DNA of 64,000 nucleotides from Laetmonice hystrix (Eukaryota), in the NCBI GenBank assembly GCA_965235115.1, contig OZ249447.1:26660001-26724000 (forward strand), in the 5' to 3' direction. Shown piece after piece: positions 16,996-63,300 of the stretch (the first letter of the stretch is position 1; each line of letters starts with the position of its first letter). Made by a program: the position numbers and the translations under genes. The notes beneath the pieces are model-generated. The model did not search any database. It saw nothing but the letters and a program-made list of their open reading frames with translations, and was not told the origin of the DNA.

Positions 16996-17180
16996 ATGGC
17001 TGCCGTGTTGTTGTATTTCTATGCAGCTTTTGTTGTGCTTGCCGGATTTCTGTTCACGACATCTCGATGTGCAAACTATCGGTGCCCTACACAGTGCTCA
17101 TGTTTAGGATCTATGGTCGACTGTAGCAAGCGGGGACTGTCGGAAATACCGGCAGACTTGCCCCATTGGGTCGAGATCTT
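16996..17180 (+). CDS. LRIG: LRIG exon 1: signal peptide + LRRNT ([62 protein letters not shown])
   Basis: ATG in ccaacATGG context; in-frame TAG upstream at 16951; hydrophobic leader; CPxxCxC..VDC cap; donor TT|GTAAGT. Confidence 0.95.
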
Positions 17181-20100
17181 GTAAGTACACATCCCTACTC
17201 GTAGACCTAGTCTTGACGGCAGGCCCCGCGAGGGAGCACCGCCTGAAACCGAGCTCCAGCGGCGAGCGACTTAGCCTAAAACTGGTGTCTATCTCGTATG
17301 GTTCCTGACAAGCAATATAGTCAAAACTGAGATTGTGGACAGTTACAACTGCTGTTAATGTATGACTACTTTTATTTTGTTAAAAGTCGGCATTGTTTCG
17401 ATGTAATCCTTGTGTCTGTAGTCTAGTGGCCATGAATAATTAATGCCCAGTGAGCGAGTGCTGCTGCCCAATTTCATTCGAAAACATGACCCAGAAAAAA
17501 GTCTACCCCAAGTTCCGAAGCCAGCACATTGATTTAGGGGCCTGATTTAGACTGGGGGGTTGCCCAGACCGGGGAAACGTTAAAGTTGGGCAGGGATGTG
17601 TTTGGGATTAGGGAGACAGAGTGAAGAATTAGTGGGAGCCGCCTCTGTCGTACAAGTTGGCAAGAAAGCTAGTGGGGGTCGGAGGAACGCGTGAAAAGGT
17701 CATGGACAGCCTGTGTATCCCGCGCCCTGTAAACACGCAGCAACTCTCCGCTTGCCAGTCGTCGACAAATATGCCAATTTGTGCAGCCGGCGAAGCATAG
17801 GCCGGCTCCCTTAAAAACCACGTTAGGAACTTTTGGTGTACCGTACTTTTATAAAGGGTCTACTCTAACGACACAATGTATCCTTTCATGCTACATTGAT
17901 GCAATGCTGTTGCGATTTTGAGCCGGTTGATCAAAGGGTTGTGATCAGAGTTATATTGTATTATTGAAATACAAATGTATGTCAAAATGTAACTTTTTGT
18001 AGCTTTGATTTACAGAAAGCTATTAAAAGGTCTTAAAGGTTTAATATTGCTGTATGATACTGCAAAATTATGAGAGTTGAAAAAGGCGGACAGCTGTGCT
18101 GGTGACCTTGTTTCTGGGGGTTGATTTGCGGTATTTGTGGCTTCTGGAACCCTGTAAAAATCGGCCAGATCTAGGGTAAAGATAAGGCCAAATTGGCAGT
18201 AATCGGTTTGTGATAGTAATTAGGAGAGGTGTTGGGTTCAGACAAGGAGCAAATGTCAAAACTGACAAAAGGCCTACATCTCGAGAACTGTGAGTAAGTT
18301 GTAGGGGAAGTTGGCAGCAAGTTGTGTGAAATGGGGGGGATGTGTGAAACTGTGAGTAAGTTGTATAGGAAGTTGGCAACAAGCTGTGTGAAATGGGGGG
18401 AATGTGTGAAACTGTGAGTAAGTTGTAGGGGAAGTTGGTAACTAGCTATGTCAAATGGAGGATGTGCGAAACTGTGAGCAACTCTGGATGCTGTGAGTAA
18501 CTTGGGGATGTCTTTGTCACAGGTCTGTGGCAGGTTTGCAACATGTTATGTAATTTTGACAGGGACACACACATATATTTTTTAAACAAACTAGTTTTTT
18601 TTTTGGCAGGGGGCCGTTATTAGTGCTTTATCTTCTAATTGAGAAGAAGGTAGTCTGATAGTGTCAATCTGATGCCTGTTTGGGGCTTGCCTATCATGGC
18701 TTCACAGAAAAAGGAAAATGAGGGATATCCTTATGGCAGGGATGCACCGTACTAAAGGGACAAGTGTATGGGAAGCCTGTGATTTTTTTTTGTCTTGGTG
18801 AAACCCACATTTCAGCCTGAGGATAAGAAGGGTGACAGACTATGGCACAACATCTCAGTCGTGGAGAGTTGTCTTAGCTGCAGGTTGGCCCCCAGTATGC
18901 TTACTTTGAGCAGGCTAGCTGGGGTCCACCCTAGCCCTGTGGCACATGGGCAGCACCTAAAGAAAACAGACTAGGAAAACAGGGTGTGAACAGAACCAGG
19001 AAGGGAATGGGAAGGTACATGTATAAATTGGGATGTGTAGTCATGATTCGAATTCGACATTTCATTCCACATTTCCTACCATGTACAAATTTGACAAGTG
19101 CTCTGAGCTTCAGAGTGTCTTGACATGTTTGAAGAATGTAATAAAACAGACTTTATATGTATAGAACCACTTGTTTGAAAATGCTGCTGATCAGCTGCTA
19201 ACCAGATGTATCCTGCTTTCCTCTGTTTCAGAGAACTACAGTCAAATGAGCTGAACACAATCCCAGATAATGCATTCGTAGGGCTGGATCAACTACAACA
19301 ACTGTAAGTTATCAACACATTATTATTCAAAATTTAATTTACAGTTATTGAAAAATATTTTTGCAGAAAACTATAACAAATGCCATTATTTTTGGCAGAC
19401 AAGCCCAGGGGAAGGAAAGAAAAAGTGAAAGTTGTTCACAGATAAGACAATCAATCTCTGGAATTGAGGTCAAAGTGGTTGTAAAGTACATGTATAAGAA
19501 GTTTGGTGTGTGACTTTTTATAATTGTTGTATTAAAACGATGAATGGTATGGGAAAATATTCAAATAATGTAGAATTTACTTTTGGTACATAGATGAATC
19601 TGATGCATCAATGTATAAAATCTCCCAGAACTGATGGCATATCATGAATATTGTAATGTGGCATAATATACCATATAAATGACAGTTTTGACAGAGATGT
19701 CAGGTTTTGCTTGCCTTGCCGAAAGTTCGTCATATATTGTAATTGATATTAACTCGAACTATTCTTGTATATATAGTGATTAATGTAAGTGATCATGCAA
19801 GGGTTCAGTCAGGTCCTTCTGAGGTACAATCAATCATTCTTAGCCATGAGCATTGCCACGGCAGTAGTAGAAGGTTGCAAATGTATGCAGCAGACAGATC
19901 TTTTCACGTGGCTGTGGGGTGCCGGGCCTGTGCTGGGAGAGGGACCGGCCTGTCTTGCTTACATTAGGGCCAGGAGGGGGCCCAGGAGAGACTCCAAGGG
20001 GGGCTAGGGGGCCGTGTTTTCATAGCTGAGTCGGATCCAACAATTGGAGGCTGGGTGCTGGCAGATCGATCCCGTATGTTGCTGGCTTGGCTTCAGTGTG

Positions 20101-35100: not shown

Positions 35101-38100
35101 TGGGAATTGGCAGTTATCAGCAAGTGCGACGGAGTGATATGTTATCACAGGCATGAGCTAGATAAGAAACATGTCAGGGAGGTGATATAATGAAGGAGCG
35201 CTGTGTAGTACATGCCATGGGGCGTGTACAATGCCTGCCAGTCGATGCAACTGTATTTGATGGATCGGCCACTGGGGTGGGGATGGAGAGGGGGTAGTAG
35301 CCGATAGAAGAACCCCGGGGAAACGTAGGGGGGCTAGGAGAATAGGGGGAGGGTGGGAAGGGCGAGGGGTATTGTAATGAGTTTGGGAGAGGGTGGGCAA
35401 GCAGAGACAATGGATCATTACTTGCAGCTGGCCTCCCTGAGGATCCAAGTGTAATCACAATGCCATTAGATTTGTTCGGACCATCAAACCAAACTGCCGT
35501 CCATGTAGAGTTTGGGTGGGGGAAGTTTTCCTATTTCAGGAAACTCCGTCATGCCAGACTCTAGGGACTGTACTTTCAATCAGTCCACTTTCCCCCGTAC
35601 CTGCCAGAATGAAGTTGGTTTATGTCAGTCATGGATCCGACAAACTCAACATTATGAAATAGTGTTCCTTCTTACTTAGGCCCAACCGATCGATCAGTCG
35701 AAGAGGACAGTGATGTTATCAAAGGAATTACCTAGTAATTCCGAAGGAGAAAACAAGAACTTCTCTCGAACATTAACTTTGACAAAGTATTTGTCAGTAT
35801 TTTCCAACCACTCGTTCCAAGTAGCGGTCAGAATATCAGATATGAAAGATAATTGTGCCAAACTGTTAATTCGGATCAAGAGACTAACATACGGGGAGCT
35901 GAGTGTGGTATTTCTAAGTCTTCACCACTTGTACTTCTCCTCCTACAAGTAGGCAGATTTCAGCTAGGTTATTCCGTGATAAAATGACGACCCATGCCGG
36001 TGGCAGTTACAGCATGTGTCTATGAGTGATTACTGGAGCGTGTCAGTGTTTCAAGGCACTAATAACGATGTTCGGCAGATGACAAATCGCTACTGAGGTC
36101 GATGTAGGTTGAGCCCTGAAGCGACCTGTTATTCGGTGTCAGAAAAATGGTGGAATGAATTTTGATGATGCAAAGGTCGGCCACTATAGTGGTTGTTTCT
36201 AATGCTAAATATTTAATCGAATTTATAATTATACCTTCCCTGAAATAAGTGGATGAAGAGTATATATAAGGCTATGGTTAGTTACTTATAGTTTATGATA
36301 TACATGTACTTTGATACAGGTTTGTTACGTGGGAATATGTTGGTATAATTATCTGGCAGTGCAATTAGTGTGGGCCGTATAATATTCCAATCCCACAATA
36401 TCTTTGGAAAGGTATAAAAAAGTTGCGGTAATTATACATAAGTTACGCCATGTCCGTCAGGGTTTGGAGATTATAATGATGATTGCAGGTGCCATATTCT
36501 GCCCACCAAAATCATCCTGTCAGATATTATCAACCCAGGTGCTCAGTAATTACTTAGACTCAGATTTTTTTGCATCCTGTTGGGTCAAAGTTATTGTCCT
36601 CAGATGGGAACTTCAGAAGAGATTTTGTTTCACTTTCTAACCAGCAATTCTTCCCAACTGCCTGAGTCTTCTCAGTAGGAGTGGGGAAGGGGGAGTTAAT
36701 TGTTTCATTTGTAAGCTGGCAAAGGTTGTGTTAATTGGTGGAGTGGAGGAGGTGCTGGGGGGGGGGGGCGTTTTGTTGTTGAGTTGGAAAGCTCGGCCTC
36801 TGTGGCCCGCCTCACGATTGCACCCCCCTCGAGATGTGAACTCATCTGCGCCGCTTGACTGCCTCGGCGGCGAGAACCAATATGGCCATGTCGGGCCATA
36901 AATCGCGCCTCTATGCTCGCCACCGGAAGGGGGTAGATGCAGCTACTGTGGAAATAGGGTCACCCCAATGGTTACCCCACCGCCACTACCAGCCCTGGCT
37001 GACAATGAGAAAACAGGGCCAGTCGTGCCACGGAATTCTCGCCGGCCACGGCTAGTAGATAGCAACCTGGGGCCACTAGGGCATGTATAGCCAGGCATCG
37101 AGAGGGTTCCTCCTGGTTGTACGGTGGTCACAATTAATTTAGAAAAAAACGACTGTTGGGACATGATTTAGTGCCGGTTAAGAGGGCCGTGTCAGCCCTG
37201 AGGCCAACGTAGAGCTGATTGAATTAAATTGACAAAAAATACAGAAACTGTAGGTTTGTATAGATTGTGATCATAATCTGCCGCCCCTCTGAAGAAAGAG
37301 AAAGAAGGGCAGAGAGCAGGAGTGGGTCAGAAAGAATTGATGTCTGTTTATAAATTGTATCCATAACTAGGGATGTCCTACACCTGTAGCTCAGAGGGGG
37401 CACGGCCCGGACCGTGTGTGACAAGGATCATCATGATAAGTACAAACAAGAAGAGGAAGTTTCTTTTGTTAGAAGTGGGAGGATTCAATGTATCCTTACT
37501 TGAATCTGTACCGATCTTTTTATTCTACGGTACTCCATTTTTATCACAGCCATGATAAAGGAAGGGGTGGCCTCTTTGACCAGTAATGGTGTTGGCGGTA
37601 ATGTTGCAAAGGGTGCAGCACCATCAAGTTGGGTCACCTGTACTATCCTGTAGTACCTGGGACAGATACCTAGTGGATAGATCAGGTCGGGGTGACTGCG
37701 CGCCGGCCCATACCCCAAGGTTAGGCGGGGAGGGGGGGGGGGGCGGTAGGTGCTGGTCGGTAAATTAATGGCCAGCCATTTCACACGTGGCTGGCAGTCA
37801 GCAGTAGATTTTTGTAGTTGAGGCGGAACAACAATACTCAGCAATGACATGGCAAGATGGATATCTGAGGGCCATCATTTGTAGGCACACATGTCGGCAA
37901 GATACAAGCTTGATAACCCTGGATAAAAGGGAAACGTCTAAATCAGCTAGCCTTTGTTTGGCCTTTATAATGAGTCCCCTGTAGATTTTATGATGATAGG
38001 TAGATGGTAGGTATGATACCCTGTACAGGAAATGCTCATCGTATGTCAATCATAGCTTTCATATTTTGTATATCTTTGTATTTTTCAGAGATCTGAGTAA

Positions 38101-41100
38101 CAACAAATTTGTGACATTCAACGGAACAAGTCTAACTAGTCTGCCCCGGCTAACGGAACTGTAAGTAGCAGTAGAGACTTATCTGTGTAGTAATATGTAA
38201 GGGGCTATCTATGTCAAGTATGATTATTTCTTTTCGAAAAAAGGGAGAAAGGAAGTAAGAGGTGATCCTCCTGCGAACTCCTGAGTGTGAATTAAGGAGC
38301 AAAAGACATTTGAGTTTCTGACATGCCAGGATCTCGAAAGTAGAAGGTTTGTTTTAGAGGAGGTGTAGAGTTAACCAACAAGATTCGTTATGAATATCAA
38401 GAGGCAGTATCTAGAACTAAGTCGGCTGTACTGATTAAGTAAACACAATCAAACTATGCCCCTCCGGTCAGCTATATACGGGCCACATACTAGAATGTAA
38501 CTGTAGGCATCTGATCAAACAAACACGTGTACCTACCTTGGCAACAGTTAAATGTTTATGTATCCGTAACGGTAAAAACCGTCAATTTATGGCCACTTTT
38601 TGTTCCTGAAGATCTACTGAAATCGTGATGTGCATATTTTTGAAAATTACGTTTATCAGGACATTCTAAGGTGTTTAAAGTTATGTTTTCTTTTTAGAAA
38701 GTAAGAAGTGCGCTACTCAGGCATAAGAATAAATTTGATTAATAATATATGATTATCAAAGCTTTGACCAGCATTGAAAATAAATTTATGCTTGCTATGT
38801 CAGCTTGCTGCTCGACATCTGACGAAAACCATACCGGTATTTCATGTATTTTTCAGTGATTGTTTTTATGTTCCAGGAAACTAGCGTACAATGAACTGGT
38901 GGAGATTCCTGTATTACCCCGAGGCCTGAATATGACCCATCTTATCCTGTAAGTTACAACCTTCTCCTTGTATCATCAGCTGTGTGAATACGAAGGGGAT
39001 GACGTTTTCTCTGGGAAGTCGTAAATTTCTTTTGAATCATCTTTGATCAGGTTTTAAAAACAGTAGGTTGAAAAATCATAGAGAAGTAGGGACACATGGA
39101 GATTTGTTCAGGTAAATAATTTACAGTAACGTTGATACAGGTATCATATAGCTGCACCATCTACGTTCTAAACTTTTAAGTTTTGAGTTAATTATCAGTT
39201 TAGTAGAGAAGTGTGTGAATAAAATATTAAATTTGGTACTGATATTAAATGTTATACCACATACCTGGCTAAGTTGGCTGAAAGGCGACAGTGAACAGTT
39301 CAATGGGCACCCACACCACCTGGATGTTCCAAGTTCTCCCAGGTGAACTACCGCCAAAGGCCGAAGGCTATCATTTGCTAGACAAGTTTTTACTGACCAC
39401 CATTTTTGCTTGTGAACATATATCAACTGAGGATAGTGACATGTCTGGGTGGAGTATGCCAGTTCTGGTGGTAGTGGGACCCCCTAGGCCACCTCCTCTG
39501 GTGGTCTTAGGAGTTTCCTCCTATTATATGTTACTCTTTTTCCACCCCTGTCGAAGTTTCCGTAAGGCCTCAAGAGTGGGTGGATTCCTGAACAGTTACT
39601 GATTATCAAACAAAAACCAAGAGGGGGGCTGGTGGTAATGGTACTGTGCTTCCCCCTGGTGGGAGATTATGATATTTGTATGTCAAGGTAGAGGCGGAAA
39701 CACTCCTCAGAGCCAATGGCTGAGCTCCACTGTAACATGATAGGAGCATATGTAGATTGACATTGGGCTGACCTTGAGGGCAGGTTCCGTGAGCTGACAT
39801 CTTCTGATCACAGTGACCCATGTGTCCAGCTTTGACCCAGGCATTAAAAAAAATCCAAGGGACCGTTGGCCAAGGTCAGTACAGGTGACCCCGCCCTCCG
39901 CAGCCGCCCAGACCAGCAGCATTTGCTGACCCCTGACCCCTGAACTGTAGTCACGCTTGGACCACATCTGAGCCTGGCTGAGATGTCAAGCGCCAGCAGC
40001 ATGGCCCGGAATCTCAATGGGGGGAATTTGTAACGATCCGGAAGCAATCAGTAAGTAACGTGAAATGTCGGTACGGGTTACGGTAAAAATCTCCTGGTGT
40101 ATGGTATAAAACGGTCTGGTTGCGACAGGCCCGTTACTGGGGGGGGGGGGGGGGGGGGGCAGCCCTCGGCCAGCTATGGACGCCGACTCCCTCAGACCAG
40201 TTGTTACATTTCAGGCGCTGAGACGCCGGGTGGCGCTCCGATACGGACTGCTCAACAAACATAGCTATTTATTGCCAGTTTGTTTGGGAGACACTGACAT
40301 GTTTAAAGTTGCTGTCAAGTTGAGGCAGCACATTTGGCATTGAGAGCTGTTTCAAGATGAGAGTGAATTCTTTTACTAATCGATGACCACAGATAGATAG
40401 ATAGCCTTTGGAAGCGTAGCCCGCCAGAGCGGTGACGTCAAAAATGTGAGGTGTTCAAATTTCGGAGAAACTTCAGTATGTTTTGGTGTTGAAGTAGGAG
40501 GCTGAATGAAATGTCGATCAGCAAATTGCTCCAAGATTCTATATTAAAGGGCCGGGGACATGTCTGTAGTGTCGGGACAGAGGATTTGGTCAGCCGAACG
40601 CGTGTTATGTCGTTGATGTGTTTGATGTGTGCACTTTGTATTACGAGCTATAGGTGTGGTGTGCCAGTGTGTGTCTTGCGCGCTGAGAGTTGAGCTTTCT
40701 ATGCCTTCCCCTTGAGGCGGCCAAGGTGCCAGTGTTTGCTTGAAGATGTGTGCTCACTTGAGCCTGCTTGAAAAGCCCGACGGCTGGGCATGGCCTTGAT
40801 TCGCTGCTCCATTCACACTGTCATGTACAAAGCTACAGATTTATAAACTCCTGCGTATACCAGCAGCACGATGGGAACATGGGTAAATAGGCTCAGGGAG
40901 AGAGGGTTTAGTCCGGCAGGCACTCCTGCTCCTGCTTGGCCAACCCCTCCTGCTCCTCCACTTCCCCCTGGGTCTCCTCCTCCTGGGTGCTGTTCTCCCT
41001 AGAGGACGATCTTCTGGTGGCGATTCTCCCAAATCGAGGTGAGACAGGTGGTCTCTTTGCCGATGATTCATTGCTCTCGGGAATTATATTGTAGATAAAA

Positions 41101-44100
41101 CAGACAAACAAAAAATACACTGTGCTTAAATACTGTTGAAATGTTGATCACGTTCTTCAAGGACAAAAGAGTCATCAAGGACTCTGTGTCATATCAATAG
41201 AGAGTACACACCTGGACGATAAAAAAAAGGGCCTTCCCAGCGGCCCAGATCTTAAGTAGACATGTAGTGATCAGTGTCAAGATATAGATAGATGCCTTTT
41301 TATCATGCTACCTAGATAGTTTTCTGCCACAATCATGACAACGGAAGACTACTTAAAGTTGTGCGTTATCTTGTTGGTGTTGCCAGTTTAAATACATACA
41401 TGAAAAAGTCGGTTTCAAGAACTTTGAACAACATTGAAGTGTCCCTGGAATCGACACCACGGTACACACTGTCTCAGAAGATGAAGGGAAACGTGCAGTT
41501 GGACTCGCCTGTCTGGGGACTTTAGGATTTAATACAGAGTGAAAGGAAATACTAGAAACATTCAGGTCTTGTTTGTCCCAGGTTCTCGGATTTATATCAG
41601 CAAATCATGTCAACTGTCGCTGAAAGTGAAGGGGGCAGTATGATAGCATGGCCGTGTATATATACATGTGTTCAGCCGTTTTCATCGGAACCTGAACAAT
41701 GGGTTGGGATGCAGAACAGGAGGAATCAATGACATGAGGTCATGGAATCTTAATATGTTGATTATCAGTCACGTCCATGGGTGTTGTTAAGCTGGGCATT
41801 GCATTGTTCTTCAATTTTTGCAAGTGCGTTTCGACCGGAAAGTTATATTAATGGTAGAATTTCAACTTAATATTTGCATTCAGCCAACCTTGGCAGAATA
41901 AACGAACATTTTGATGAATACGTGCCCACGTGGTAATACGTGTGTGGTACAGATATAAAAATCTACTGACGACGTGTGCAGTCATGCTGTGAATAGGTTG
42001 GACGGCAGTCCGGTTCTCATCCACCAAGAGTTGTCTTTTATTAACAAGTCACTCCAAGTATAGTAACAATTTGGATTGATTGGGGCGAGGGGGGATGTGG
42101 TGTTGTTTAGGTAAACAACTGATAGGGTGCTGCAGCTCCTTTCGGAGTTTTGCCTGGAGACAAAATCGCGCAAAATATGGCGGGCGGTTGGGGAGCACAG
42201 GGAGTTTGGAGGGAGCCCCGCCCCCCATGTTCCTCCTCCCCCACCACCACCAACCCCAGCCCCCCCCCCCCCCCCGCATGCTTAGGCTGCATGTGGATCA
42301 GCAAGAAGAAAAAGTTGAAAAGAAAGAAAAAGTACTTTTGAAGAGAGGTATGTGTCTGGCGCAGTACATAAATGATGCTGCACAGTTGAGTGGTGTCATA
42401 ACCAGGTGGCGCCAGCGGTGCTGTGTGTTTAGTGGCGCCAGAGCAGAGATCGAGGCCGCGAGCAGCCTGACCTGCTCACAACCCCTGACCTCGAGGTGTG
42501 AAACCACCTGAAAATAGACTCGTCTTACACTATGCATGATTGTGAAAAAACGGCAGGACTTATGAGTGTACAAATTGTGGGGTTTATGAAAGCCAGGGAG
42601 AGGGACGGCAGGGCACAGTCATCCATGACTGGCGGCTCGGGAGGTAATTCGCATTTCGTCCGAGCTCATGGACGTGGAATCGTTGCTACCAGTGCCCATT
42701 ATCAAACTTGGCGTTGATATAAACATGGCAAACTGATTGTTAAATTTTCTCACCTTTTTCCGAGTTTATGAATTATTCATGGTAGAAAAGATACTCTGTC
42801 AGTGTCCGTATGGTAACAATGCTCCACCGAACCTAGCCAGCCGTCGCCTTCTCCCTTTGTCATGGGCAGGGCTCGGCCTTTAATTTGAGAACAGAAAAAA
42901 ATAGACTAATGGCTCAATAAATCCGCAGTGAAAGAACGGCTGTTGATTCCTAAACCTCTATTCATGTTCACATTAAATCAATAAGGCCACTCCTGTGTCT
43001 GCAGCTTTTATATATGTGCTTGACATGGCAAGCAAGTACAGGTTCATGTAGGTATACACCTATGGTATAATCTAGAAAACGTTTTACACTCTAGTTGTAG
43101 CTCATAGTCATACACCGCAAGGTTTATCTTCTTAACTAAATCAGTCAGAAAGTGGTGGAACTAAAGTTGATGGTGTTTGTGTTTTTGTGATTGTTACAGA
43201 AATCATAACCGGATCAGTTGGAACTAAAGTTGATGATGTTTGTGTTTTTGTGATTGTTACAGAAATCATAACCGGATCAGTTGGAACTAAAGTTGATGAT
43301 GTTTGTGTTTTTGTGATTGTTACAGAAATCATAACCGAATCAGTTGGAACTAAAGTTGATGGTGTTTGTGTTTTTGTGATTGTTACAGAAATCATAACCG
43401 GATCAGTTGGAACTAAAGTTGATGATGTTTGTGTTTTTGTGATTGTTACAGAAATCATAACCGGATCAGTTGGAACTAAAGTTGATGATGTTTGTGTTTT
43501 TGTGATTGTTACAGAAATCATAACCGGATCAGTTGGAACTAAAGTTGATGATGTTTGTGTTTTGTGATTGTTACAGAAATCATAACCAGATCAGTTGGAA
43601 CTAAAGTTGATGATGTTTTTGTGATTGTTAATAACCGGATCAGTTGGAACTAAAGTTGATGATGTTTGTGTTTTTGTGATTGTTACAGAAATCATAACCG
43701 GATCAGTTGGAACTAAAGTTGATGATGTTTGTGTTTTGTGATTGTTACAGAAATCATAACCGGATCAGTTGGAACTAAAGTTGATGGTGTTTGTGTTTTG
43801 TGATTGTTACAGAAATCATAACCGGATCAGTTGGAACTAAAGTTGATGATGTTTGTGTTTTTGTGATTGTTACAGAAATCATAACTGGATCAGTTGGAAC
43901 TAAAGTTGATGGTGTTTGTGTTTTGTGATTGTTACAGATATCATAACCGGATCAGTTGGAACTAAAGTTGATGGTGTTTGTGTTTTGTGATTGTTACAGA
44001 AATCATAACCGGATCAGTTGGAACTAAAGTTGATGATGTTTGTGTTTTGTGATTGTTACAGAAATCATAACCGGATCAGTTGGAACTAAAGTTGATGATG

Positions 44101-47100
44101 TTTGTGTTTTGTGATTGTTACAGAAATCATAACCGGATCAGTTGGAACTAAAGTTGATGATGTTTGTGTTTTTGTGATTGTTACAGAAATCATAAGTTGA
44201 TGATGTTTGTGTTTTGTGATTGTTACAGAAATCATAATAAAGTTGATGATGTTTGTGTTTTTGTGATTGTTACAGAAATCATAACCGGATCAGTGCTATC
44301 ATACCCGAAGCCGTGGAGAACCTGATGAAGTTACGAACTCTCGACTTGAACTACAATGATGTGACTGAGCTGACGACTGGCAGTTTCCCTCACCATCCCA
44401 ACCTTCACCAGCTGTAAGTAAAGAAACCACACAACCGTGGGAAAAGTTTCTAGGCAGCTTTTCAATCAGAGATCATTTATTCTAGTTAAACTTATAATCA
44501 GTCAAGCAATTATCGTCTCAGCTGCACTATGGACATGGTTTTTTATTAGAATAAGTACAGGAAGTAGCAAAGATTATTCGTGAGAGGAAGCAAAAACAAT
44601 TTAAACATCATTTATTTAGATAAACGACATATGTACCCTACAGTCTGACATGTTGTGCTCTTCAGCTTTGTAATGTTAATAGTGTTCACCCCTAAAAAGG
44701 TTGGATTTTAGTGATGATTTACGTCAGTGAAAGCCATCTCGATAAAAAGAGAAGGCAGTTTGTTCCCTATCCTACGTCAGTTTGATATATCGCATCATGC
44801 GATTCGCTTGTATGAATAATATAAAGGACTATTGATGTGGGCCCCTTACTCAATGCTCCATTGAGGCGCTAGGAGGATGAAATACATTTTTCCAGTTCCA
44901 TCAGGCAGGTGAGGTATAAGAAACAGCATGAGGGGGGTATTTACAATTAAAGGGTCCCCAGGGCCTGCATGCGACTTTGTGTGTCGACATGTATATGGCA
45001 AGACTGAATTAACCTCAGTGTTCGTCCCATAACTCCATCATGGTGATATGGGGCAGAATCTAAGCGGTATTGGTGTGGCTATGTGAAGTTGTGGTTTTAA
45101 TTCGGAGCCAGATGGCGCACGCATCCCAGATGGATAGCAATTGGTTCACACCTGTGATTACGAGGCCCCAGTGTGTAGTGGTCCCGACGACCAGAACCGC
45201 AGTGACAAATGGTCGTGCAGCAGCGCGGGTGACGATGGCGTCAATCTGAATTACAGATTTTATAATATCGCGGCCTTCCTGTGGTTAAGCCATGCATAAA
45301 TGCATGCATAACGGTTGGTGCTGCCCGTATATCACAGTTTTCATCAGTGGCCGTCGGGACGACTGGGGGGGAGGGGTGGGGGCAATGAAAGCGGCGCGCA
45401 TAAAAACCGCACCGATGTACCACCAGGGGGTCCTCTCTTGTCCTCTGGGCAACCTGTGCGCTAAACTGAGATGTGACAAGAACAATGAAGGGAATTTTTT
45501 CCCTCCAACTTCCCGCAACGGACCGTAGATAGTTTTTATAGTATAACAGGCCTTTAGGTGTGGTTTGACTGGGGACTGTACCTGAAATTACCATTGACCA
45601 TGCAGTGCCGTAGCCCCGGGAGTTTAGATCTTGGATATGACCTTTGGAGGGAACCTATAGTATTCTCCATGGATAGCCAGTCATTGTGTAAACAGACTCG
45701 GTTGTAGTTTTGTAACCTTGGGCCAGGTTGAGAAGCGAGATATTGTAGATGGTACATGAGCAGGGTGATAGCGTCCGTGTTCAATTTTTTGTCATGTCAG
45801 GCAGTTATGTGAGTGGCATGGGTGAAGAGGTGGAGTTTTTTGATTGTTTGCCGCCATCTCAGATGTGGACAGGAGACCCTCCTATTGCCGACTCATTCAC
45901 CATAAGTTGTCCACTACTGTCAGTGTGAGATAGGCAGCGGTCAGTCGCTGTACAAAGGGTCAGGGCCCTGCGCCCTAGTCCTGCATAGATAACCGCAACA
46001 ACTTTGATGTGGGATCACTCCGTCGGAATAAAACAATAATTTGTATGCGATTGAAGTCGGAATTGCCACGGAGATGAGAGCCCCGTGCCGGTCTCAGGAG
46101 CGCCCCTCGGAGTGCTGGTCAGCAAGATAGATGGCAGCTGGTCAAGCCGGCCTGACCCCGGCAAGACTTAGATCCGAGCCGTCCTGATCCTCGATTCATG
46201 ACCGGAATCTAAAAGAGGCTTGTGACTGGTGATGTTTGACAAGCAGTGCTGTGTTTCCGGCCCGATAACGAGTGGCGCTAAGATGGCTGTAATCTGTAGG
46301 CCATAGATCCTGACCGGCCCGACAGGTGGGCAGCCGCTGGGGCCGGGCGGGAACGGCCACTGGGGACCGGACCGGGACAGCCGCCGGTCCCACCAATCGT
46401 TTCATTGCCCCGTTATTGGGCAACCATCACTGGCTGGGCGCTGACGATAGCAGCGGTCAGTTGATGCATGGTCAGCTGGGGTCCAGCGGCTTGGACTGTC
46501 CGGCCGATAACAGCCCCTGATTTACCGAGGGAAACCACCGGGTTAGGCCGGACTTCACACCGACTTGTTTTAAAGGCCGGACGGGAGGCAATCGATGGGA
46601 TCCATGCTGTGTTAAACCATGGCTGACTGACTACAGACTACAAGCAGGCTGTATTTGTGAGACCACCCATTCACACAGATCAAACTGATCCTATTAAACT
46701 GAGACGATTCACAACACGGACTATACCGAGCACTGTAGTTATTGAAAAACACCCTGCATTGTAATACCGGTTAAAGGCCGGGGGTTTGGCAGATATATGA
46801 AATACCACTTGATAAATGCTAGGAAAAGTTCCATCAAAATGACGACAAAGTGTCTTTCCCGTTTCACGCAAAAAGAACTTTAAAAAGTTGCAAGAATATT
46901 CTGTATAGGTTTTGGGGATATTCTGCCAAGGGGATTACCTGGCGGCAGAATAGTGGCAAAGCCGCCATTACTTCCCACTTGTAAAGGCGCGAGTGTCGGC
47001 GTAGGGAATTCGGGGTTATTTGTTGCTGTCACATGTGTCGAAGTTGGCCATCACACAGACTGAAAGATGGAGTATTTTGATGGGTACCGACACCCTCATG

Positions 47101-50100: not shown

Positions 50101-53100
50101 CGTCAACCCCCAGCGACATATTTACGTAGCCGCCTGTAATTACGGATCACTTCATTGTACAGGGCCGAGTAATTTGAAACATTCACGAAAGTTGAACAGA
50201 AAAACAGAAAAAGGCCGAGACAATGCTAATCAGATAGAAAGGTGTTTGGGAGTTGTTGAGGTAGGAGAGATTGCATCAGTCCCTGGCACGGAGTGGTAAG
50301 ATAGTGACCCCGGTAACAGTGCCGTGTCCTTAGCATAGAGGACGCTCTGCCGTCGCTGATTAGCGAGTTGCGTGTTCAGCGGGCCCAGCGAGCCCCCAAA
50401 GTGGCCAGTAGTCTCCGCTTTGTGGGCAGCTGTGATCCAAAGGCTCAGTGTTGACGGGCGGTGCCAGGCGCGAGGTGCCACGGCGCCGGTTTTAGCGGGT
50501 CATTACAGAGGTGAGAGCTGGGAGAAAGTGGTCAGCTGGGAGAGGGGGGTAGAGGGTGTCACCCTGTTATGTGAGCAGGTTGTAATCAACTCCTCCCTCA
50601 CCCTACCAATGAACCACCTGCTGCCGGAGTTAGCCGTCCTGTCCCCGGCAGCGCGACAGTACCCACCGCTCCTTGCCTGTCACGCTCAGGGGGAACAGAC
50701 AAACTGGGCAAGTACACCTGGGGACCCAATAATGATGGAATCCATGACAGAATTAAAGACTAGTCTTTGAGTTTATCCGGCATTTGATTTCTTTTCGATC
50801 ATCGCATCATTCCGGGTCTAAATGAATGGCCAAGAGTATGATAATAACAGGTTTTAGAGCTCCAGGAACTCTTTGAACGAACAGCGACAGCTACTAAAGG
50901 TGGTTGACGTGATCTTCTCTTTGATGTCATGTGGGGTGGTTTACTCTTTCAGTTTGATGTGATACTTCAGTCGGAGATGACAACTCATGTGTCGGTATCT
51001 GTTCCTGTGTTTCAGGTTCCTGAACAACAACAAAATAAACGTGCTGGAAAAGGGTGCCCTAGACAACCTCACATCTATTGAGTGGATCAAGCTCAACAAG
51101 AACAAGCTGCATCAGTTTCCCAAGAACCTTTTTGCCCGGCTGGGCAATCTCAAGTACCTGTAAGTACAAATGCTTTGCAGATTTTCTCAGCTTAAGGGGG
51201 AGCAGGTGCTGGCAGGTCAGATTGCAGAGAGAAACAGTGGTGCCAGAGATTGTAGAGAGAAGCAGTGGTACCAGGGGTTGCAGAGAGAAACAGTGGTGCC
51301 TGAGATTGCAGAGAGAAACAGTGGTGCCAGGGATTGCAGAGAGAAACAGTGGTGCCAGAGATTGCAGAGAGAAACAGTGGTGCCAGAGATTGCAGAGAGA
51401 AACAGTGGTGCCAGAGATGGCAGAGAGAAACAGTGGTGCCAGAGATTGCAGAGAGAAACAGTGGTGCCAGAGATTGCAGAGAGAAACAGTGGTGCCTGAG
51501 ATTGCAGAGAGAAACAGTGGTGCCTGAGATTGCAGAGAGAAACAGTGGTGCCAGAGATTGCAGAGAGAAACAGTGGTGCCAGAGATTGCAGAGAGAAACA
51601 GTGGTGCCAGAGATTGCAGAGAGAAACAGTGGTGCCAGAGATGGCAGAGAGAAACAGTGGTGCCTGAGATTGCAGAGAGAAACAGTGGTGCCAAAGATTG
51701 CAGAGAGAAACAGTAGTGCCAGAGAGTTGTTCCCTGATGCAGGGATAACAATGGCTGGAGTAATGCCGTTGATGGTGATCAATGACAAGAAGTAAATGGT
51801 ACAGTTTATTGTTAACGGGTCTGGGAGGAGAGAGAGCGGGCAGGAACTGGAGTGTTTCTCTCCGGAAACCGCGAGATCTATGCAGCTCTAAACGGACGGC
51901 AGTGTCCAATTTGGGCCTGACGGGCAGCTGGAAGGATGGAGTACCGACTGGCGGTGGTCGAGGTGGCCAGGCCTCCTCCTCCTCCTCCTCCTCCTCCCGG
52001 CGGATGGGGAGATGGAGAGTGATGCGGCAGTGTCGGAGGTACCAATGACTCAGTACTCAGGTCAGGTAATGCTAATGACAGGCCACGCCGACAGCTATGA
52101 GTCACTCCTCATTTCGGCTTTGAACTGGAGACGCAATTTGGTGACGGAGGAAACAGAATGGCTGTTAGGGGACCTGTGCCGGACAGTCCAGTGGCCATTA
52201 TTACCATCGTATGGGTCAATTCTGACCAGGAGCAGGCTAAACGGCTTTAAAGGGATAGGTAAAATGGGAGGTTCCCGGTTTGAAATATGTAGGACGAATT
52301 AAGATGACAATTTGCATGGTAACAAGGTAGACAATGAAGAACCCCTTGAGTCTCCCTCCCGTCGACCATTCCGCTAAACAAGGTACTTGTGGTTCATGCA
52401 GGTGTAGGGGGAGGGGCTCATTAAAACGCTGAGTGTGTGGTAGGGCTTGGGTCGGGGTAGGGGGTGGACACTTAAAGGGTGGTCAGTTGTGGAGGTCATG
52501 AGGTCATAACCCTGCAAGCGGCGCTGACCCGCGGCCGTGTAACTGTGGCTGTCGCCCAACCTCCAATGTAACCCGAGAAACGATCTTTCTCCCCTTTACT
52601 GGAGCATGCAAGCGGTGCCCTGAATACTAAAACAGACCATTGGAAACCGGAGACGGCGCGGAAAACAATGCTTGCCTACACTGAGGCAAGCAACACTCAG
52701 CTTTCATCCAATGGGTTCTGACCCGAACACAGAATTACTGAGAACTCGCGAATTACATAACTTCACATAGCCAATACTGGGACACTGAGGGACACTAGTA
52801 ACTGGGACACTGAGGGACACTATAGTGTATCGTTTTGATAATTAATGGGGTTCATTCAAAGGCATTATAAAGGGCTTCGTTTTGGGTGTACTTGTTTGTG
52901 TCAGCAGACTTATAACCAGGTTAGGTGTGGTTTACTCGTTAGGGGAATCAAAAATGTCTAACAGAAGTTGAGCTCGTCATGAAGTCCAGGAGTGGCCGGA
53001 TGGGAACTGATGTCAACTCGTGGTACATGGGGTGCAATACTGGTGGCGATGGTCGCGGAATATTAAAACTATGTGAGCGGAGACAGAGGCGTGAAACCCA

Positions 53101-54304: not shown

Positions 54305-57300
54305 TTCTGCTGCTGCTGTCGCTGTCACTGCTGCTGTTGCTGCTCCCGGTCAGCTCCCACCAAAGGCAGCACAGCATCCAGCATAGAAGGAAAATAATTG
54401 GCTAATTTGGCAGCCTGCTCAAAAAAATAAGTTCACTTATCTCTTTTGACATTGTGATGTTCGTGACATGAGCAAGGCATTAACTTTATAAATGGTGGGA
54501 TCGGTTGGCAGCGGTCGGTTGTTTGTCTGAGTCAGAGCTAGGGGCGGGAGGGGACGGGGGGGGGGGTCCATCAAGATTGATTTAATGGCTTGCTCGTCCC
54601 TTGTGGAATTTGTAATAACTGCTTGAAATGACACACCTTGAGATGAATTGTTCATTTTGCATCTTGTTATATTTTTGACATTTAATGACTCATGCCTGGC
54701 ATGCCGGAGTTAGAATAGATGTAAATGTAGTCACCAGGCGCTATTCATGAGGAGTATCGTGTCAAACTTGTCAAATTACAACGGTTATCGATTAGAGTTC
54801 TTTTTATATTATTAAAAGCAAATGCACAAGAGCGATTTTCGGCATGGCTATCCTACAGTGTCAAAATCAGCTTCGCCAAGTATTAAAATTCGTAGTGTAA
54901 AGATTATCCTGTCATCTGATGTAAATTATGGGTTGAATTTAGTAGAATGGACTGATTTGATTTTGTTTTACCATTGTCTGTTGCAGGGAGTTGAATCGTA
55001 ATAAGTTCCGCAGTGTGGAGGGACTGGCCTTCCAGGGTTTGGAGAATTTAACCACTCTGAAACTCCGGCGGAACTCAATCACCGAGCTAATGGACGGCGC
55101 CTTCTGGGGACTACAGCACAACCTGCAAAACCTGTGAGTGGTCAACTCTTGAAATCAGGGAACTGTACATAATGAAATAGGCGCAGACTGTAGACGTCAG
55201 CGGCCGGTACAGGTCGATGTCAATGAGCGAGATGTCAGAATCAAACAAAGGGTTTCCGTAACGGGTTTTATTCCCGCTCAGTCAGCGGCAACGTCCGCGC
55301 TGATGAAATGAAAATAAACGCGCAATGAGTGTTCAAGTGGGGTTCACGGGGTTGAAGAGCAGTAAGTGTGTTTACACGTCATTGACATGGGTCTCACCGT
55401 TCACACCATGGGTACCGACCTTCACCACTACACCTGTCCCGGGCCAGGTATCGCCACCACTGGCCTGGCCAGTTTAATTGAAAGTGACAGTAAACCCTTG
55501 GTCTGGTATCGCATTACGCCATTACACGACTGGCCAGGTCGTTGGTCAGGGTGCCGTCGGTAGTGGGCGCGGCTGCTCACAGAGGGCGCTGCGGGCCGGC
55601 TGGGCACGTTTTGTTTGTCAGTCGGTCAGTTTCCACCTGTTTTCACAACTGCTTATAATGTCAAGACGACAAGATTGTTTAATTAGTAAACCACCTTGAG
55701 GGGTGAATGTTAGGTCATCAGCGGGGGAGATGCAGGGTTTGACACGTACCGGGTGGTGAACAGAGAGGTATGATTACCTTTGGGCTTAGAGAAAATCCGT
55801 TGACAATAATTGGGACCGCTTTCATCCGGAAATATCCCGGTTCAGCAGAATCCAGTCTAGTCTATGAGGATATATCTTTCACCGAAATGCCGGGGTAACG
55901 TGTAGTATTGTTGAATGAATGTCAAAATTATGTAATTTATTTTAACCGCTATCCCTTTTTATTTTTCAGCCAACTTGACCATAATAATATCACTTCAGTG
56001 ACCAAAGGCTGGCTGTACAAGCTGAGTTCTCTGCAACAGTTGTAAGTATCTACCTTCTCTAACATTAGGCTAACTGCTAACAGACTTGCATACTCTACGT
56101 TATGGTTACTAGGTTAGGGTACTAGGGTAAATATATATTTTTCCTGTCTCTGTAGTACTTGAGAAACGTTATAGTATTTTGAAGGTTTCACGAGCAGGGG
56201 GGGAGACGTTATTTTAGAGGTTGTATATGTATGCCATGACTATAGGATTTGGTGGAGTAGGGGAGATCGGTTAATGTCAGGGAGTGGATACTTGTGTCAT
56301 TACGTGCCGGAAGTACCTGCTCCTGGTGGTGGATCCCCGTACTACAGACAGGAGATGGTTCCCAGGGGTTCCTACCACCACGGAACCGCTACCACTATGA
56401 GTACCAGTATGGAACCGCTACCACTATAACCAGTATGGAACCGCTACCCCTATAGCCAGTATGGAACCGCTACCACTATAAGTACCAGTATGGAACCGCT
56501 ACCACTATAACCAGTATGGAACCGCTACCACTATAACCAGTATGGAACCGCTACCCCTATAGCCAGTATGGAACCGCTACCACTATAAGTACCAGTATGG
56601 AACCGCTACCCCTATAGCCAGTACCAGTATGGAACCGCTACCACTATAACCAGTATGGAACCACTATAACCAGTATGGAACCGCTACCACTATAACCAGT
56701 ATGGAACCACAATAACCAGTATGGAACCACTATAACCAGTAAGGAACCGATACCACTATAACCAGTAAGGAACCGATACCACTATAACCAGTAAGAAACC
56801 GATACCACTATAACCAGTAAGGAACCGCTACCACTATAACCAGTAAGGAACCGATACCACTATAACCAGTAAGGAACCGATACCACTATAACCAGTATGG
56901 AACCGCTACCACTATAACCAGTATGGAACCGCTACCACTATAACCAGTATGGAACCGCTACCACTATAACCAGTAAGGAACCGCTACCACTATAGCTAGT
57001 ATGGAACCGTTAGCACTATAACCAGTATGGAACCGCTACCACTATAGCCAGTATGGAACCGCTACCACTATAACCAGTATGGAACCGCTACCACTATAAC
57101 CAGTAAAGAACTGCTACCACTATAGCTAGTATGGAACCGTTAGCACTATAACCAGTATGGAACCGATACCACTATAACCAGTAAGGAACCGCTACCACTA
57201 TAACCAGTAAGGAACCGATACCACTATAACCAGTATGGAACCGCTACCACTATAACCAGTAAGGAACCGATACCACTATAACCAGTATGGAACCGCTACC

Positions 57301-60300
57301 ACTATAACCAGTATGGAACCGCTACCACTATAACCAGTATGGAACCGCTACCACTATAACCAGTAAGGAACCGCTACCACTATAGCTAGTATGGAACCGT
57401 TAGCACTATAACCAGTATGGAACCGCTACCACTATAGCCAGTATGGAACCGCTACCACTATAACCAGTATGGAACCGCTACCACTATAACCAGTAAAGAA
57501 CTGCTACCACTATAGCTAGTATGGAACCGTTAGCACTATAACCAGTATGGAACCGATACCACTATAACCAGTATGGAACCGCTACCACTATAACCAGTAA
57601 GGAACCGATACCACTATAACCAGTATGGAACCGCTACCACTATAACCAGTATGGAACCGCTACCACTATAACCAGTATGGAACCGCTACCACTATAACCA
57701 GTAAGGAACCGATACCACTATAACCAGTAAGGAACCGCTACCACTATAACCAGTAAGGAACCGATACCACTATAACCAGTAAGGAACCGATACCACTATA
57801 ACCAGTAAGGAACCGATACCACTATAACCAGTAAGGAACCGATACCACTATAACCAGTATGGAACCGCTACCACTATAACCAGTATGGAACCGCTACCAC
57901 TATAACCAGTATGGAACCGCTACCACTATAACCAGTATGGAACCGCTACCACTATAACCAGTAAGGAACCGCTACCACTATAGCTAGTATGGAACCGTTA
58001 GCACTATAACCAGTATGGAACCGCTACCACTATAGCCAGTATGGAACCGCTACCACTATAACCAGTGTGGAACCACTATAACCAGTAAGGAACCGCTTCC
58101 ACTATAACCAGTAAGGAACCACTATAACCAGTAAGGAACCGCTACCGCTATAACCCGTATGGAACCGCTACCACTATAACCAGTATGGAACCGCTCGCGC
58201 CTGTTCCTGCTCGTGTTGTCCGAAGCCTGAAGCCTTTAGCCTAGAAAAACTACGTCGGGGCGAGTTGAGCATCGAAGTATTATTGTAAAGACGGCAAGAT
58301 GCTGGAGAAGCTGGTTGATCATATGGGAACAATATATTAGGCCAAGGCAGGACGAATGGTTCGGGCGTGGGTAGGGTAGAGCAGGGATTGCTTGTTTTCA
58401 CAGACTGTCCACAGCCGAGCCGGGGGGTGCAGGGAGGTGGTGGCCTGGGTCCCGCCATATGCTGGCCAGCCCGGTTAATACTGGCCTGTTTGGTTGCTAA
58501 CTGCCCCCATCTAAATGTGTTCACCAGACATGGCCATCCCACGCTTGGATTAACCCATCAGGGTTTATCATAATCTTAACATTTGAAAGGTCCCGAATGT
58601 TACCAGCCAGTAGTACTTGTCGGCTTTACAGATAGATCAAAAGTAGGACCCCCCGCCCACCCTGCCCATCCTGTGAAATTTAAAATAGGATGAACGTAAA
58701 ATCAACTTGATTTAGATTTGATTCCAGTGGCGAACGTGTTGGTACCCAGTAGGCTAAACTAAAATAACGGGAAGCGTGTTTGTGGCAAGTGTTATACTAG
58801 TTACTATCAGGACTTCCATTTGACATGGCTGTGGCATTCAGATATGTTAAGTACTTTTCCTGTCAGGGAATGAAATTTTAGTTGGGTGAGGGGGAGATTT
58901 CAGATGGGATTTGGGTCTGGGCTCGGCGGGCCGTTCCCCTGACCCCCTGTTAGTCCACACAAACGTAGGTCGAGGCATCCCGGCGGCAGGTCAACTGGCC
59001 CCCTGGTGGTCACCAAGGGAATCATCAACCAGAAGGCACCATTTCATTATAGGGCGCTGAGGGGTGTAACGACTACCCCACTGGTGATTCCACCTTGAGA
59101 CACTAGGGGGCAGCAGGGGGTACGTGCAGCTGGTTTATGGCCGTCACAAAACACAAGTACCCCATCCCACACATCACCCCACCCCTTCTTGAGGAAGGAT
59201 TCTAAATCCCGGGTTAATATTAGACGCCCAGGAGCCGGCAATCAACGGTTGCTTAGAGGGGTCCAGTCCTCCATACCAACCCTGTGGTCTGCAAGATTTC
59301 ACCCCAGGGGCAAGATATATGTAACAATCTAAGAGCTTGCTTTACATGCGCCCCACCTGGGGGATATAGCCCACCCCCGTCCTCCTGTTAGAGATATGTT
59401 AAAATGACGGTGGTGTATCTGTAGAGATATGTTAAAATGGCGGTGGTGTATCTGTATGAGAAAGTATCGCCACATTGACCACACCACAGACCTTACTTTA
59501 TGTACCTGATGGTCGGACGAGAGAATAAATACAATCATATCTCACCCTGCTGTCATGGAGTCTGGGCTCCAGCGGCAACTTCTGAGTAGATCAGAGAAAT
59601 ACATTAGAGTTGCTTGACGACACATGATTGGGAGCATGACATATCAAAGGTACGGTAGAAATTATTGCTGCGCCAATAGCCGCCGTGTTTATTTTGAGCA
59701 GCTGGCTTGACAACGGTTGACGTAAAAAGTGGAGCCAAGTGGCTGTACGCTCGTCTTTTGGCAAGTTTCTTTTGTAGTAACGTGGCAAGAAAAATGCGTT
59801 TGGATATTTGAATGAGATTTGAGAGTATTGTGGGTGAGATTGGTGAGGAGGGGTGAAGAATGGTCGGGGTTCAGTAAATATGTGAGGCTTGGGAATTAAT
59901 AAGACTGCGGTGAGGGGGAGCTGGGTAACCGGCTGGGGAGAGGCGACAGTTCCAATCGGCGGGGAGAGGAGGGGGGGTAGGAGGGGGAGGGGGAGTAGAA
60001 GAGTCAGAGGGCCATGTTTGGCGAGGACCAACAGAAAATAATTGATGGTTTTCGGAGGTGCCGATGGTGTCGGGGTGAGTGTATGCACACACGTGGGCCC
60101 ATTGTGGCGGCCAGGCAGGGAGAGCTGCGTTCCTCCACGCCGGATCAGGACGGTTGGAGATGGGACATGACGAACACAATAGGACGACCGGCGTCCGGCG
60201 TCACACGCTGATGGCCGGCCCTCTCACACAACTATTGTAACATTCACCAACTGTGTACACCACCAACAAAAATGACCCGCAACTTTCTATAATCATGTGG

Positions 60301-63300
60301 TAGTCGAGTAAACGACCTGGACGACAAGTGGTGCTGTCTTTGTGTGGCAGGGAGCCGGGCGTGTTTGTCGACCAGGAGCGGTACAGTTCAAGGTGTAGCA
60401 ATCCAGCGAGGTGTTACCGTGTCGCTCTGTGTTGATTCAGTGGCCGTGAGATCGTCGCTGGGCCCCCTCCTGCATGCTGCAAACATAAAATGAAATCCAA
60501 TGGCCAGTTGCCTCTTTCTGTGCCTGTCTTAATTTGTCTGCCTCAATAATGTGGGCGCAGTGTGGGGAATTTATGGGGTTAGCCCCGGTCATGCCTTGCC
60601 CATGATACCTTGTATTTATCCAAGCACGCTCGCTTGTCACCGTCTGTGTCTTCGTATTGTGGTGGCTTTAAACGGCTAAGGGATGTTCTCACAACAGGTG
60701 TGCGCTGTTCACACAGGACCTGTCTGTTCCTCCCCGGGACCATCCTCTCACAGACCCCCGTATACCTCACCAGCTGCACACTCTCGTAAACAGCACCCGG
60801 CCACAGGCAGAATTAAACCGTGTTTATTTGGCAAGGCTTTTTCCTCATCTCGATCAAAATGTGCGTGTGATTAAACGGGGCCTGTGAATCATCGCTGCGA
60901 GTCTGCGAGACAGGATGAAAAATATTGTCCCAGGTGGGGAGGCGTTGGGCAATGTGGGGACAGCGGGGCGCACGTGTTTTCCTATGGTCCGGGATATGGG
61001 GGCCGTGTTGTCTTAGAAGGTTGCCATAAGGCCCGGGGAGGGGCTGCTTCCACTCCGGGCTACTCTAGGGCACGGTTTGGGGAGAAGGGAGGAGGCAGTG
61101 ATTGTCTCCCACCCCTGGGGGTTACCTCAATACGTCCAATCTCACCTTCTCCAGGGCATCGCGCCTGAAATCAAGGCGAATCCCAAGTTTGTGAAGCTAG
61201 ATATATGATCACAGCTTGGGGGATTATCCCTGAATGGTCTGATCGCCCCTGGTTTTAACATCACGTGGGATTAACTAAAAGACATGGTGCCAGCCTCCGG
61301 GCTGGTATTGATGGTGATGAGAGTGAAGAGTTATCTAAACACGGTAGTTGGGGATATCAAGGCTCTGGTTACGACCTGACCCTGGTTGACTTGGTGATGG
61401 TGTGAACACGGTTAGAAATGTGGGAGGAAGGATTCCACCGAAGTGTGTGGTCACCGTGATGGCGGGTGGTGGTTGGGATGTTGGTGGGTAGAGGGAGTGG
61501 CTGTCAGTGTTGTGATGGCCTCCTTTCTCCCATCCTCCCCACCTCCCCATCCCGGCCTCACCAGCCTCCCCATCCCCCGGCCTGTCCTCATGGCGTGTTT
61601 TCCTTGTATCCCTTCAGGTCACTGACGCACAACAAGATCAGTCGTATCGACTCCGACAGTTGGGATTTCTGCCAGCAACTCTGGGAACTGTAAGTTACCA
61701 CTAAACAGTTATATGTAACTTGATTGGTTCTTCTAAACAAAATCCGTGTAATTTGTACACCAAACTTTTTTCTCCGCCTTGTGTCTATTGTCAGATTACA
61801 TACAAAGCGTGGTTTTTAGTAAGAAAAAACCGAATCCCTGAGTGAAAGGCCTGATAATTACTGCTAACTCTACAAGCCCTTTGCGCCCTATCATCATGTA
61901 ATGATACCTTCAGATAAACTGCTTGCTGAGATTTTTTATGAGTAGTGGCAGAGATTATAGTTGTCGGTGTAAATGTGGCATATTGACAGATGTTGTTTCT
62001 TCTCCAGGGACCTGTCTCATAATAACGTGACGGCTATCTCTGAGGGCACCTTCTCCAAGCTGAAGGCACTCAAGGTGCTCCTCCTCAACAATAATCACAT
62101 CTCTTTCATCGGAGTCCATTCGTTCGCCGGCCTCTCATCACTACAAATACTGTAAGTAACATTGGCACGCCGTGAAAAAAGTACGCTATCACAGGTTATT
62201 TGTAAACCGCAAGTCGTTGACGGGCAAGGAATAAAGGGGTGGGGAATGCAGTACTGCCACCTAGCGGCGAGTGTGGATGTGCTGCCACCTAGTGTAGAAA
62301 TGTGGAGTTACATTGACATTGACTTTGTTGTAATTCCTGACGGGGTGTTGTTTTACAGGGAGATGAACAACAATGAAATATCGTGGACGATCGAAGACAT
62401 GAGTGGAGCGTTTGATGGACTTCAGGCCTTGAGTCGACTGGAGTTAGACAGCAACCGAATCAAATCCATCGGGAAGCGGGCGTTTTCAGGCCTGGAACAA
62501 TTACAGCATCTTCATCTCAATAATAATACAATCAACTCGATCCAGAGCAATGCTTTCTCACACATCCCAAGTCTGAGGGAACTGTAAGTAGATTTCTACT
62601 TACTGTTGGTGTCTTTACACAGCCATTTTCCTGATTTGTACCTTTGGTAACCTTAAATCGCAGAAAGCTTTAAAAAAAATAAAAACATTTTTGTTGTTTG
62701 TTTCAGACGGTTAAACTCGACGAACCTTCTGTGTGACTGTCAGTTGTCATGGTTACCAAAGTGGCTGAAGGATGCAGGTTTCCAGGAGACAGTGGATGGA
62801 CGCTGTGCTCATCCGGATTCATTAAAGGGTCGCAGTATCTTTGACATTGCTCACGAAGACTTCAAATGTAGTAAGTAATAACAGCAGGTCATGCCGTAAA
62901 ACATCTTTGAATTTTTATTTTTAAGCCCAAAATGATCCCTGGACCTTTCCAAAGAAAGATATTGTTAAGGTCATAAGCTCCCTTACCTCATAACCTAACA
63001 AACATAATGAGTTTTATTGCTAGTCTTTTAGCCAAAGAAAGATATTATATTAAAGCTACTCTGCCATCCGCTCTCCTCAGACTTCATTGTGAATTGTTGT
63101 GTGTTGCAGGTGATTTCCCACGCCCCATCATCATGACAGACCCACTGGAGCAGGTGGTACTCCGGGGTGAGAACGTCACCCTGCGGTGTCAGGCAGCCTC
63201 CAGCTCCGAGTCGCCCATGACAGCACAGTGGAAGAAAGACAATATTGTGAGTCAATGTACCATCATCTTTGGTAGTCTCAGTCGTTGTAAATAGATATCT

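Follow-up and report, generated by a model that had tools for sequence, protein, structure and literature searches.

When a minisatellite spreads across an intron-exon boundary and multiplies the splice acceptor that it covers, are the extra copies used, and does their number set the output of the gene? This question is raised by a locus in Laetmonice hystrix (assembly GCA_965235115.1, contig OZ249447.1, positions 26,660,001 to 26,724,000). We analyzed this whole stretch of 64,000 nucleotides, hereafter the window, which contains 0 ambiguous bases (N); positions are counted from its first letter and all features lie on the forward strand. Within about 1.1 kb of intron 4, an LRIG gene carries 17 extra copies of the acceptor of its exon 5. 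An earlier sequence-only reading of this DNA offered two explanations for them, a copy-number-dependent splicing attenuator and a neutral expansion passed over by exon definition. Our analysis suggests that the latter is better supported. We consider it probable (about 0.72) that the array is a mirage-type minisatellite on an acceptor, tolerated as a by-product rather than evolved as an expression dial.

A minisatellite built on the exon 5 acceptor

The array occupies positions 43156 to 44294 and is composed of 62- or 63-nt units, each extending from intron position -44 to exon position +19. A full unit consists of the final ~44 nt of intron 4 and the initial 19 nt of exon 5, and includes TTACAG followed across the junction by AAATCATAACCGGATCAGT. 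That the repeat consists of the intron 4/exon 5 junction itself, with 19 exon nucleotides, had been proposed previously and is borne out by the sequence, by Tandem Repeats Finder (TRF) and by our gene model. TRF reported a period of 63, with 16.8 copies, 92% matches and a score of 1735 over 43156-44195, as well as a higher-order period of 124 nt and additional rows with 42- and 47-nt periods reaching 44284. The exon-derived part of the unit codes for the conserved NHNRIS of the leucine-rich repeat (LRR).

A script scan identified 18 TTACAG sites, with the final G at 43199, 43262, 43325, 43388, 43451, 43514, 43576, 43688, 43750, 43812, 43875, 43937, 43999, 44061, 44123, 44186, 44228 and 44275. 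This list, together with one unit that has no AG, is identical to that given by the sequence-only reading. Sites are spaced by 63 or 62 nt, except for a single 112-nt step, where a 49-nt unit has no AG, and the closing steps of 42 and 47 nt. The array contains 15 full units and one 49-nt unit (43596-43644), from which an internal deletion removed CAGAAATC and with it the acceptor AG, then a 16th full unit, a 42-nt unit and a 47-nt unit, with the authentic junction last. The first 15 decoy acceptors (AG ends 43199 to 44123) span 43198-44124, and the two shortened terminal units span 44187-44275.

All 18 acceptors share one donor partner, that of exon 4 (38877-38948; 72 nt), and intron 4 extends from 38949 to 44275. 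Exon 5 (44276-44413; 138 nt, phase 2) encodes 46 amino acids of LRR3-4, its first 19 nt belong to the repeat unit, and its donor is at 44414. The productive acceptor AG (44274-44275) was assigned from the HLIL/NHNRISAI junction, which aligns with ...HNKIRSV of human LRIG1. The units are arranged head to tail with this AG at the exon-side end, and it is the only one that is continuous with the body of exon 5.

Decoy acceptors and their predicted products

The decoys closely resemble the real site. Over -20..+3, nine of them agree with it at 23/23 positions, and six share its exact sequence across 38 nt upstream and 19 nt downstream. TTGAT, a full match to yUnAy with the A at about -30, is present in every unit, and the two shortened ones also keep the U/G tract. 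The sequence-only reading had pointed out that the last AG is preceded by units without CTAAA. This loss is real; as a reason for the last AG to win, however, it is not compelling, because TTGAT is kept in all units. Over +20..+79, the real site and a decoy differ in GAR triplets (6 vs 3) and in T fraction (0.22 vs 0.38), a modest difference that is only suggestive of a purine-rich enhancer.

Only AG 44275 keeps the LRIG frame open, and it is the sole productive acceptor, as had been claimed. According to the gene model, splicing of exon 4 to any of decoys 1-15 would yield a 142-aa product ending in ...HLIL followed by N/Y-H-N-x-I-S-W-N and then TAA, with the first such TAA at 43225-43227. Use of 44186 or 44228 would shift the frame by +1, predicting products of 179 and 165 aa, respectively, that end at a TGA within exon 5 (44323-44325), 88 nt before the exon 5 donor. 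Both the shared tail of the first 15 decoys and the frameshift caused by the 42- and 47-nt units had been foreseen from the letters. Predicted decoy stops lie 88 to 1186 nt ahead of the exon 5/6 junction. All of them therefore precede a downstream exon junction by more than 50-55 nt, satisfying the usual rule for nonsense-mediated decay (NMD) coupled to alternative splicing, and the earlier suggestion that these stops fit NMD holds.

Predicted exons differ widely in size, being 414-1214 nt from decoys 1-13 and only 185-290 nt from the three nearest decoys (44123, 44186 and 44228). The two kinds of junction can be told apart by sequence: exon 4 joined to ...GGATCAGT and then GCTATC marks the productive site, whereas TGGAAC, AAATCATAAG or AAATCATAAT at that point marks a decoy.

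A coding or RNA-gene role of the array was also considered and rejected. Only trivial 126-aa open reading frames run through the six 63-nt units, whose length is divisible by three, and these frames are broken where the 62-nt units begin. No Rfam match was found in 38000-46000.

Origin and homogeneity of the array

When four units were used as a query against the 627-Mb genome, no match was detected outside the LRIG locus. The unit is therefore derived from the gene and not from a mobile element, and an origin from a dispersed repeat or transposon was ruled out. Older, decayed units were not detected to the left of the array, where the local alignment score (18) lay at the shuffle mean (16.9, maximum 25); thus, the array has a sharp left boundary.

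Average identity among the 15 full units is 97.5%, and 11 of these 15 fall into four types generated by two binary variants (A/G at one site and T4/T5). There are four singleton substitutions, all in the exon-derived part, two of which are CpG transitions. To judge from these units, the array is young or homogenised, as in ordinary minisatellite turnover. Given such identity, selection for or against the AGs cannot be read from it.

Minisatellites are abundant throughout this genome. In fifteen arbitrary 10-kb samples taken across 13 chromosomes, arrays with a period >=10 accounted for 12.2% of the sequence, at ~3 arrays per 10 kb, which makes the genome unusually dense in such repeats. The window contains about ten arrays (9.0% of bases). 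Arrays take up ~10% of bases within the gene span; for its 20 internal junctions, random placement therefore predicts ~2 junction hits, and 1 is seen. An array on one LRIG junction is therefore expected by chance.

Support from raw reads

A search of public sequencing runs for the locus returned only three, all from one sample and none of RNA; they are possibly the data behind the assembly and probably come from the same individual. In all three, introns are covered evenly and splice joints are absent, as in DNA. Their contigs end at 43080 on the left and resume at 44265/44288 on the right, and none spans the array. Unitigs of the repeat unit had a k-mer depth of 350-450, compared with 30-65 in the flanks, giving a ratio of 7.6-10.2, although contig depth is not a copy number. 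The 31-mers concerned are present 8.7-9.95 times in the array as assembled, in line with this ratio, and therefore gross inflation of the array by the assembly is unlikely. For both haplotypes, k-mer depth agrees with the assembled copy number within about 15%, with no contig across the array.

In addition, contigs of two runs differ from the assembly in intron 4 (window 38700-42900) by ~30 single-nucleotide polymorphisms, 19 inserted nucleotides after 39620 and 2 deleted ones at 41221. These differences indicate a divergent second haplotype in the same individual.

Comparison with known systems

The closest counterparts are the mirages of amphioxus. Splice sites are duplicated by minisatellites in Adh3, globin, TnC and PGBD5, and no aberrant mRNA results (PMC3087553, PMC3902484); Adh3 data and reverse transcription PCR (RT-PCR) indicate that regular splicing goes on undisturbed (PMC3087553); TnC, Adh and PGBD5 were reported as further cases (PMC3902484). 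As in these mirages, including those of the globins BflGb6 and BflGb9, the LRIG unit lies across an intron-exon boundary and the authentic junction is at the edge of the array. Many copies retain AG/GT signals in both systems and units are highly similar, which in amphioxus reflects concerted evolution (PMC3087553, PMC3902484). The unit in BflGb6 comprises the 3' end of an intron together with the 5' portion of exon 2 (PMC3087553); likewise, the LRIG array repeats the 3' end of its intron along with the 5' portion of the next exon. It differs from the globin mirages in having 17 extra copies rather than 3-6 and a unit of 63 nt rather than 150-160. Moreover, amphioxus belongs to another animal lineage, and normal splicing was seen there by RT-PCR, whereas here we infer it. 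Structural features of a mirage are nevertheless present: a gene-derived unit that spans the boundary and carries a splice signal, and an authentic terminal copy on the exon side. This kind of array is already known, and the LRIG array adds a clean acceptor-side case.

Two human variable number tandem repeats (VNTRs) include a donor. The 37-bp VNTR in intron 7 of F7 (IVS7) spans the exon 7 donor, and its identical pseudo-donors are silent while the exon-adjacent site is chosen (PMC1557585). The LRIG and F7 arrays share a boundary-spanning element at the exon and an authentic site accompanied by identical pseudo-sites that could function in principle (PMC1557585). However, F7 has a donor array of 5-8 copies, and the 5'-to-3' scanning proposed for it is not simply transferable to 3' splice sites. 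The 25-bp VNTR in intron 18 of ABCA7 starts with the exon 18 donor. Use of its next copy accounts for ~2% of transcripts independently of array length (PMC5954066) and leads to a frameshifted NMD isoform (PMC5954066), while skipping of exon 19 increases 3-4 fold with VNTR length and array length correlates with expression (PMC5954066). Like the LRIG array, this VNTR includes a canonical splice site; unlike it, it is on the donor side, has no exon sequence beyond the GT and has a measured functional effect.

Single decoy sites provide a different comparison. In caspase-2, one decoy 3' splice site within In100 alters exon choice (PMC2082412), and decoy exons promote intron retention (PMC6097662). 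The LRIG copies resemble them as intronic elements similar to 3' splice sites, and the known elements occupy the splicing machinery but are not themselves joined (PMC2082412, PMC6097662). In100 and decoy exons are, however, single and conserved and have an adjacent PTB-binding region, whereas the LRIG array is young and repetitive. No PTB-type motifs (UCUU/CUCU) were found in the LRIG unit sequences, which 3' of each AG are exon-derived and then U/G-rich. The In100 combination of a decoy acceptor with a downstream PTB-binding pyrimidine region is thus absent from the array.

Interpretation

In the scenario that we favor, tandem duplication of a 63-bp segment across the intron 4/exon 5 boundary would have been followed by expansion and by homogenisation through slippage or unequal exchange. 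When an acceptor is duplicated in this way, an intact junction always remains at the exon-side edge; the gene is therefore not broken, and the array need not be harmful. The spliceosome would use the exon-adjacent AG 44275, because it alone runs on into the exon body and no other site lies closer to the exon 5 donor, as expected under exon definition. The 17 upstream copies would be silent or rarely used, and rare transcripts joined to a decoy would carry a premature stop and be removed by NMD. Leakage, if any, is likeliest at the three nearest decoys (44123, 44186 and 44228).

Several points weigh against this scenario. The choice of acceptor 44275 is one that we infer. The three nearest decoys give exons of 185-290 nt and so are not excluded by exon definition alone. 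The best-studied precedents, F7 and ABCA7, are donor arrays (PMC1557585, PMC5954066), and the evidence for acceptor arrays comes from RT-PCR in amphioxus (PMC3087553); low-level decoy use masked by NMD would evade ordinary RT-PCR.

If decoys were instead to compete for the exon 4 donor, a share of transcripts that grows with copy number would be diverted to NMD or to a secreted 142-aa fragment, and the array would set LRIG dosage. The perfect match of nine decoys to the real site over -20..+3, the branch-like motif and U/G tract carried by each unit, the position of every decoy stop at least 88 nt before the next junction and the fact that decoys are transcribed ahead of the true site are all consistent with such an attenuator. 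It is nonetheless unlikely, given that copies in documented junction-spanning arrays are silent or ~2% used, independently of length (PMC3087553, PMC3902484, PMC1557585, PMC5954066), and repeat density alone accounts for the presence of the array. The units are, moreover, too alike to reveal conservation of the AGs.

The array might also act without any decoy being joined. Its 18 U2AF/U2-binding modules and UG-rich tracts could form non-productive complexes or recruit repressors, resulting in slower removal of intron 4 or in exon 5 skipping that grows with array length and stays in frame (138 nt, 46 aa). The length-dependent 3-4 fold rise in skipping of ABCA7 exon 19 (PMC5954066), the shift of caspase-2 exon choice by one decoy 3' splice site (PMC2082412) and the intron retention promoted by decoy exons (PMC6097662) argue for such an effect, and exon 5 has a length that is a multiple of three. 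The case is purely one of analogy, however; the unit lacks the UCUU/CUCU motifs of In100, and removing two LRRs from the solenoid is probably damaging and not a means of regulation. We regard this mechanism as quite improbable. An assembly artefact, in which the copy number was inflated or the array mis-joined, has a very small chance of being correct. It could draw on the lack of a contig spanning the array in three runs that probably come from the assembled individual, but the unitig depth ratio (7.6-10.2) matches the assembled multiplicity (8.7-9.95), both flanks are cleanly joined as far as 43080 and again from 44265, and higher-order structure within the array and its distinctive deleted units also speak against it.

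Taken alone, the tolerated minisatellite would be one more example of a described oddity. It is doubtful that the 17 acceptors do compete and that LRIG output falls with array length; if this were true, the VNTR would be an inherited and mutable allele setting the dosage of a growth-factor-receptor antagonist, and a natural experiment on how the spliceosome chooses one among identical sites. In either case, the locus is a clean natural test case, with 18 acceptors, 9 of which equal the real one over -20..+3, located at graded distances of 185-1214 nt from one donor. Given RNA from this species, it could show how much exon-body sequence and donor proximity weigh against 3' splice-site sequence in acceptor choice, and what level of unproductive splicing is tolerated in a genome rich in minisatellites.

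Host gene

LRR-motif scans, tblastn and a phase-aware exon scan identified exons 1-11 of the host gene in the window (16996-62583); the tblastn query for exon finding was a short stretch of human LRIG1 taken from PDB search output. Besides exons 4 and 5, the model includes exon 1 (16996-17180), which encodes the signal peptide and Cys-rich cap, exons 2 (19232-19303) and 3 (38089-38160), and exons 6 (51016-51159), 7 (54987-55133), 8 (55970-56041), 9 (61618-61689), 10 (62008-62151) and 11 (62359-62583). Joined together, the 11 exons form an open 447-aa LRR frame, with AG/GT at every intron and all introns in phase 2. The model also confirms the exon numbering (exons 4 and 5) used by the sequence-only reading.

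In the PDB search, human LRIG1 (4u7l) was the best solved relative for exons 5 and 11, and the match included the irregular EISxTIED repeat. An Ig exon located just downstream of the window matches LRIG1 4u7m (72 bits) and is followed by a further Ig domain, a transmembrane segment and a tail. On the strength of the LRR exons and of this downstream match, the gene is an LRIG orthologue, and its intron 4 lies at 38949-44275. The set of parts found is that of the LRIG family: signal peptide, LRRNT/Cys-rich cap, LRRs (about 15 in the family), Ig domains, transmembrane segment and tail. A protein-representative search with a 75-aa LRR exon was dominated by giant, mostly bacterial LRR proteins, and recovered no LRIG relative. 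In addition, long open frames with His/Gln-rich and Asp runs were observed 3' of the LRIG transmembrane exon (2272-2781 and 1268-1888 of the downstream stretch). They may be low-complexity exons of the cytoplasmic tail.

Other minisatellites in the window

Several other arrays were observed in or near the gene. In intron 1, a 62-nt x 3.1 array (18286-18478) has a strong donor-like motif in its unit, AACT followed by GTGAGTAAGT, which resembles the ...AACT/GTAAGT donors of LRIG LRR exons; no exon adjoining this array was found. A 28-nt x 18 minisatellite (51219-51725) starts 60 nt 3' of the exon 6 donor (51159) and excludes the junction. Intron 8 contains a large 26-nt x 70 minisatellite of 1.8 kb (56382-58195). 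Finally, a G/T-rich 10-nt x 70 array is located 5' of the gene (8885-9576), where it causes a local spike in GC skew.

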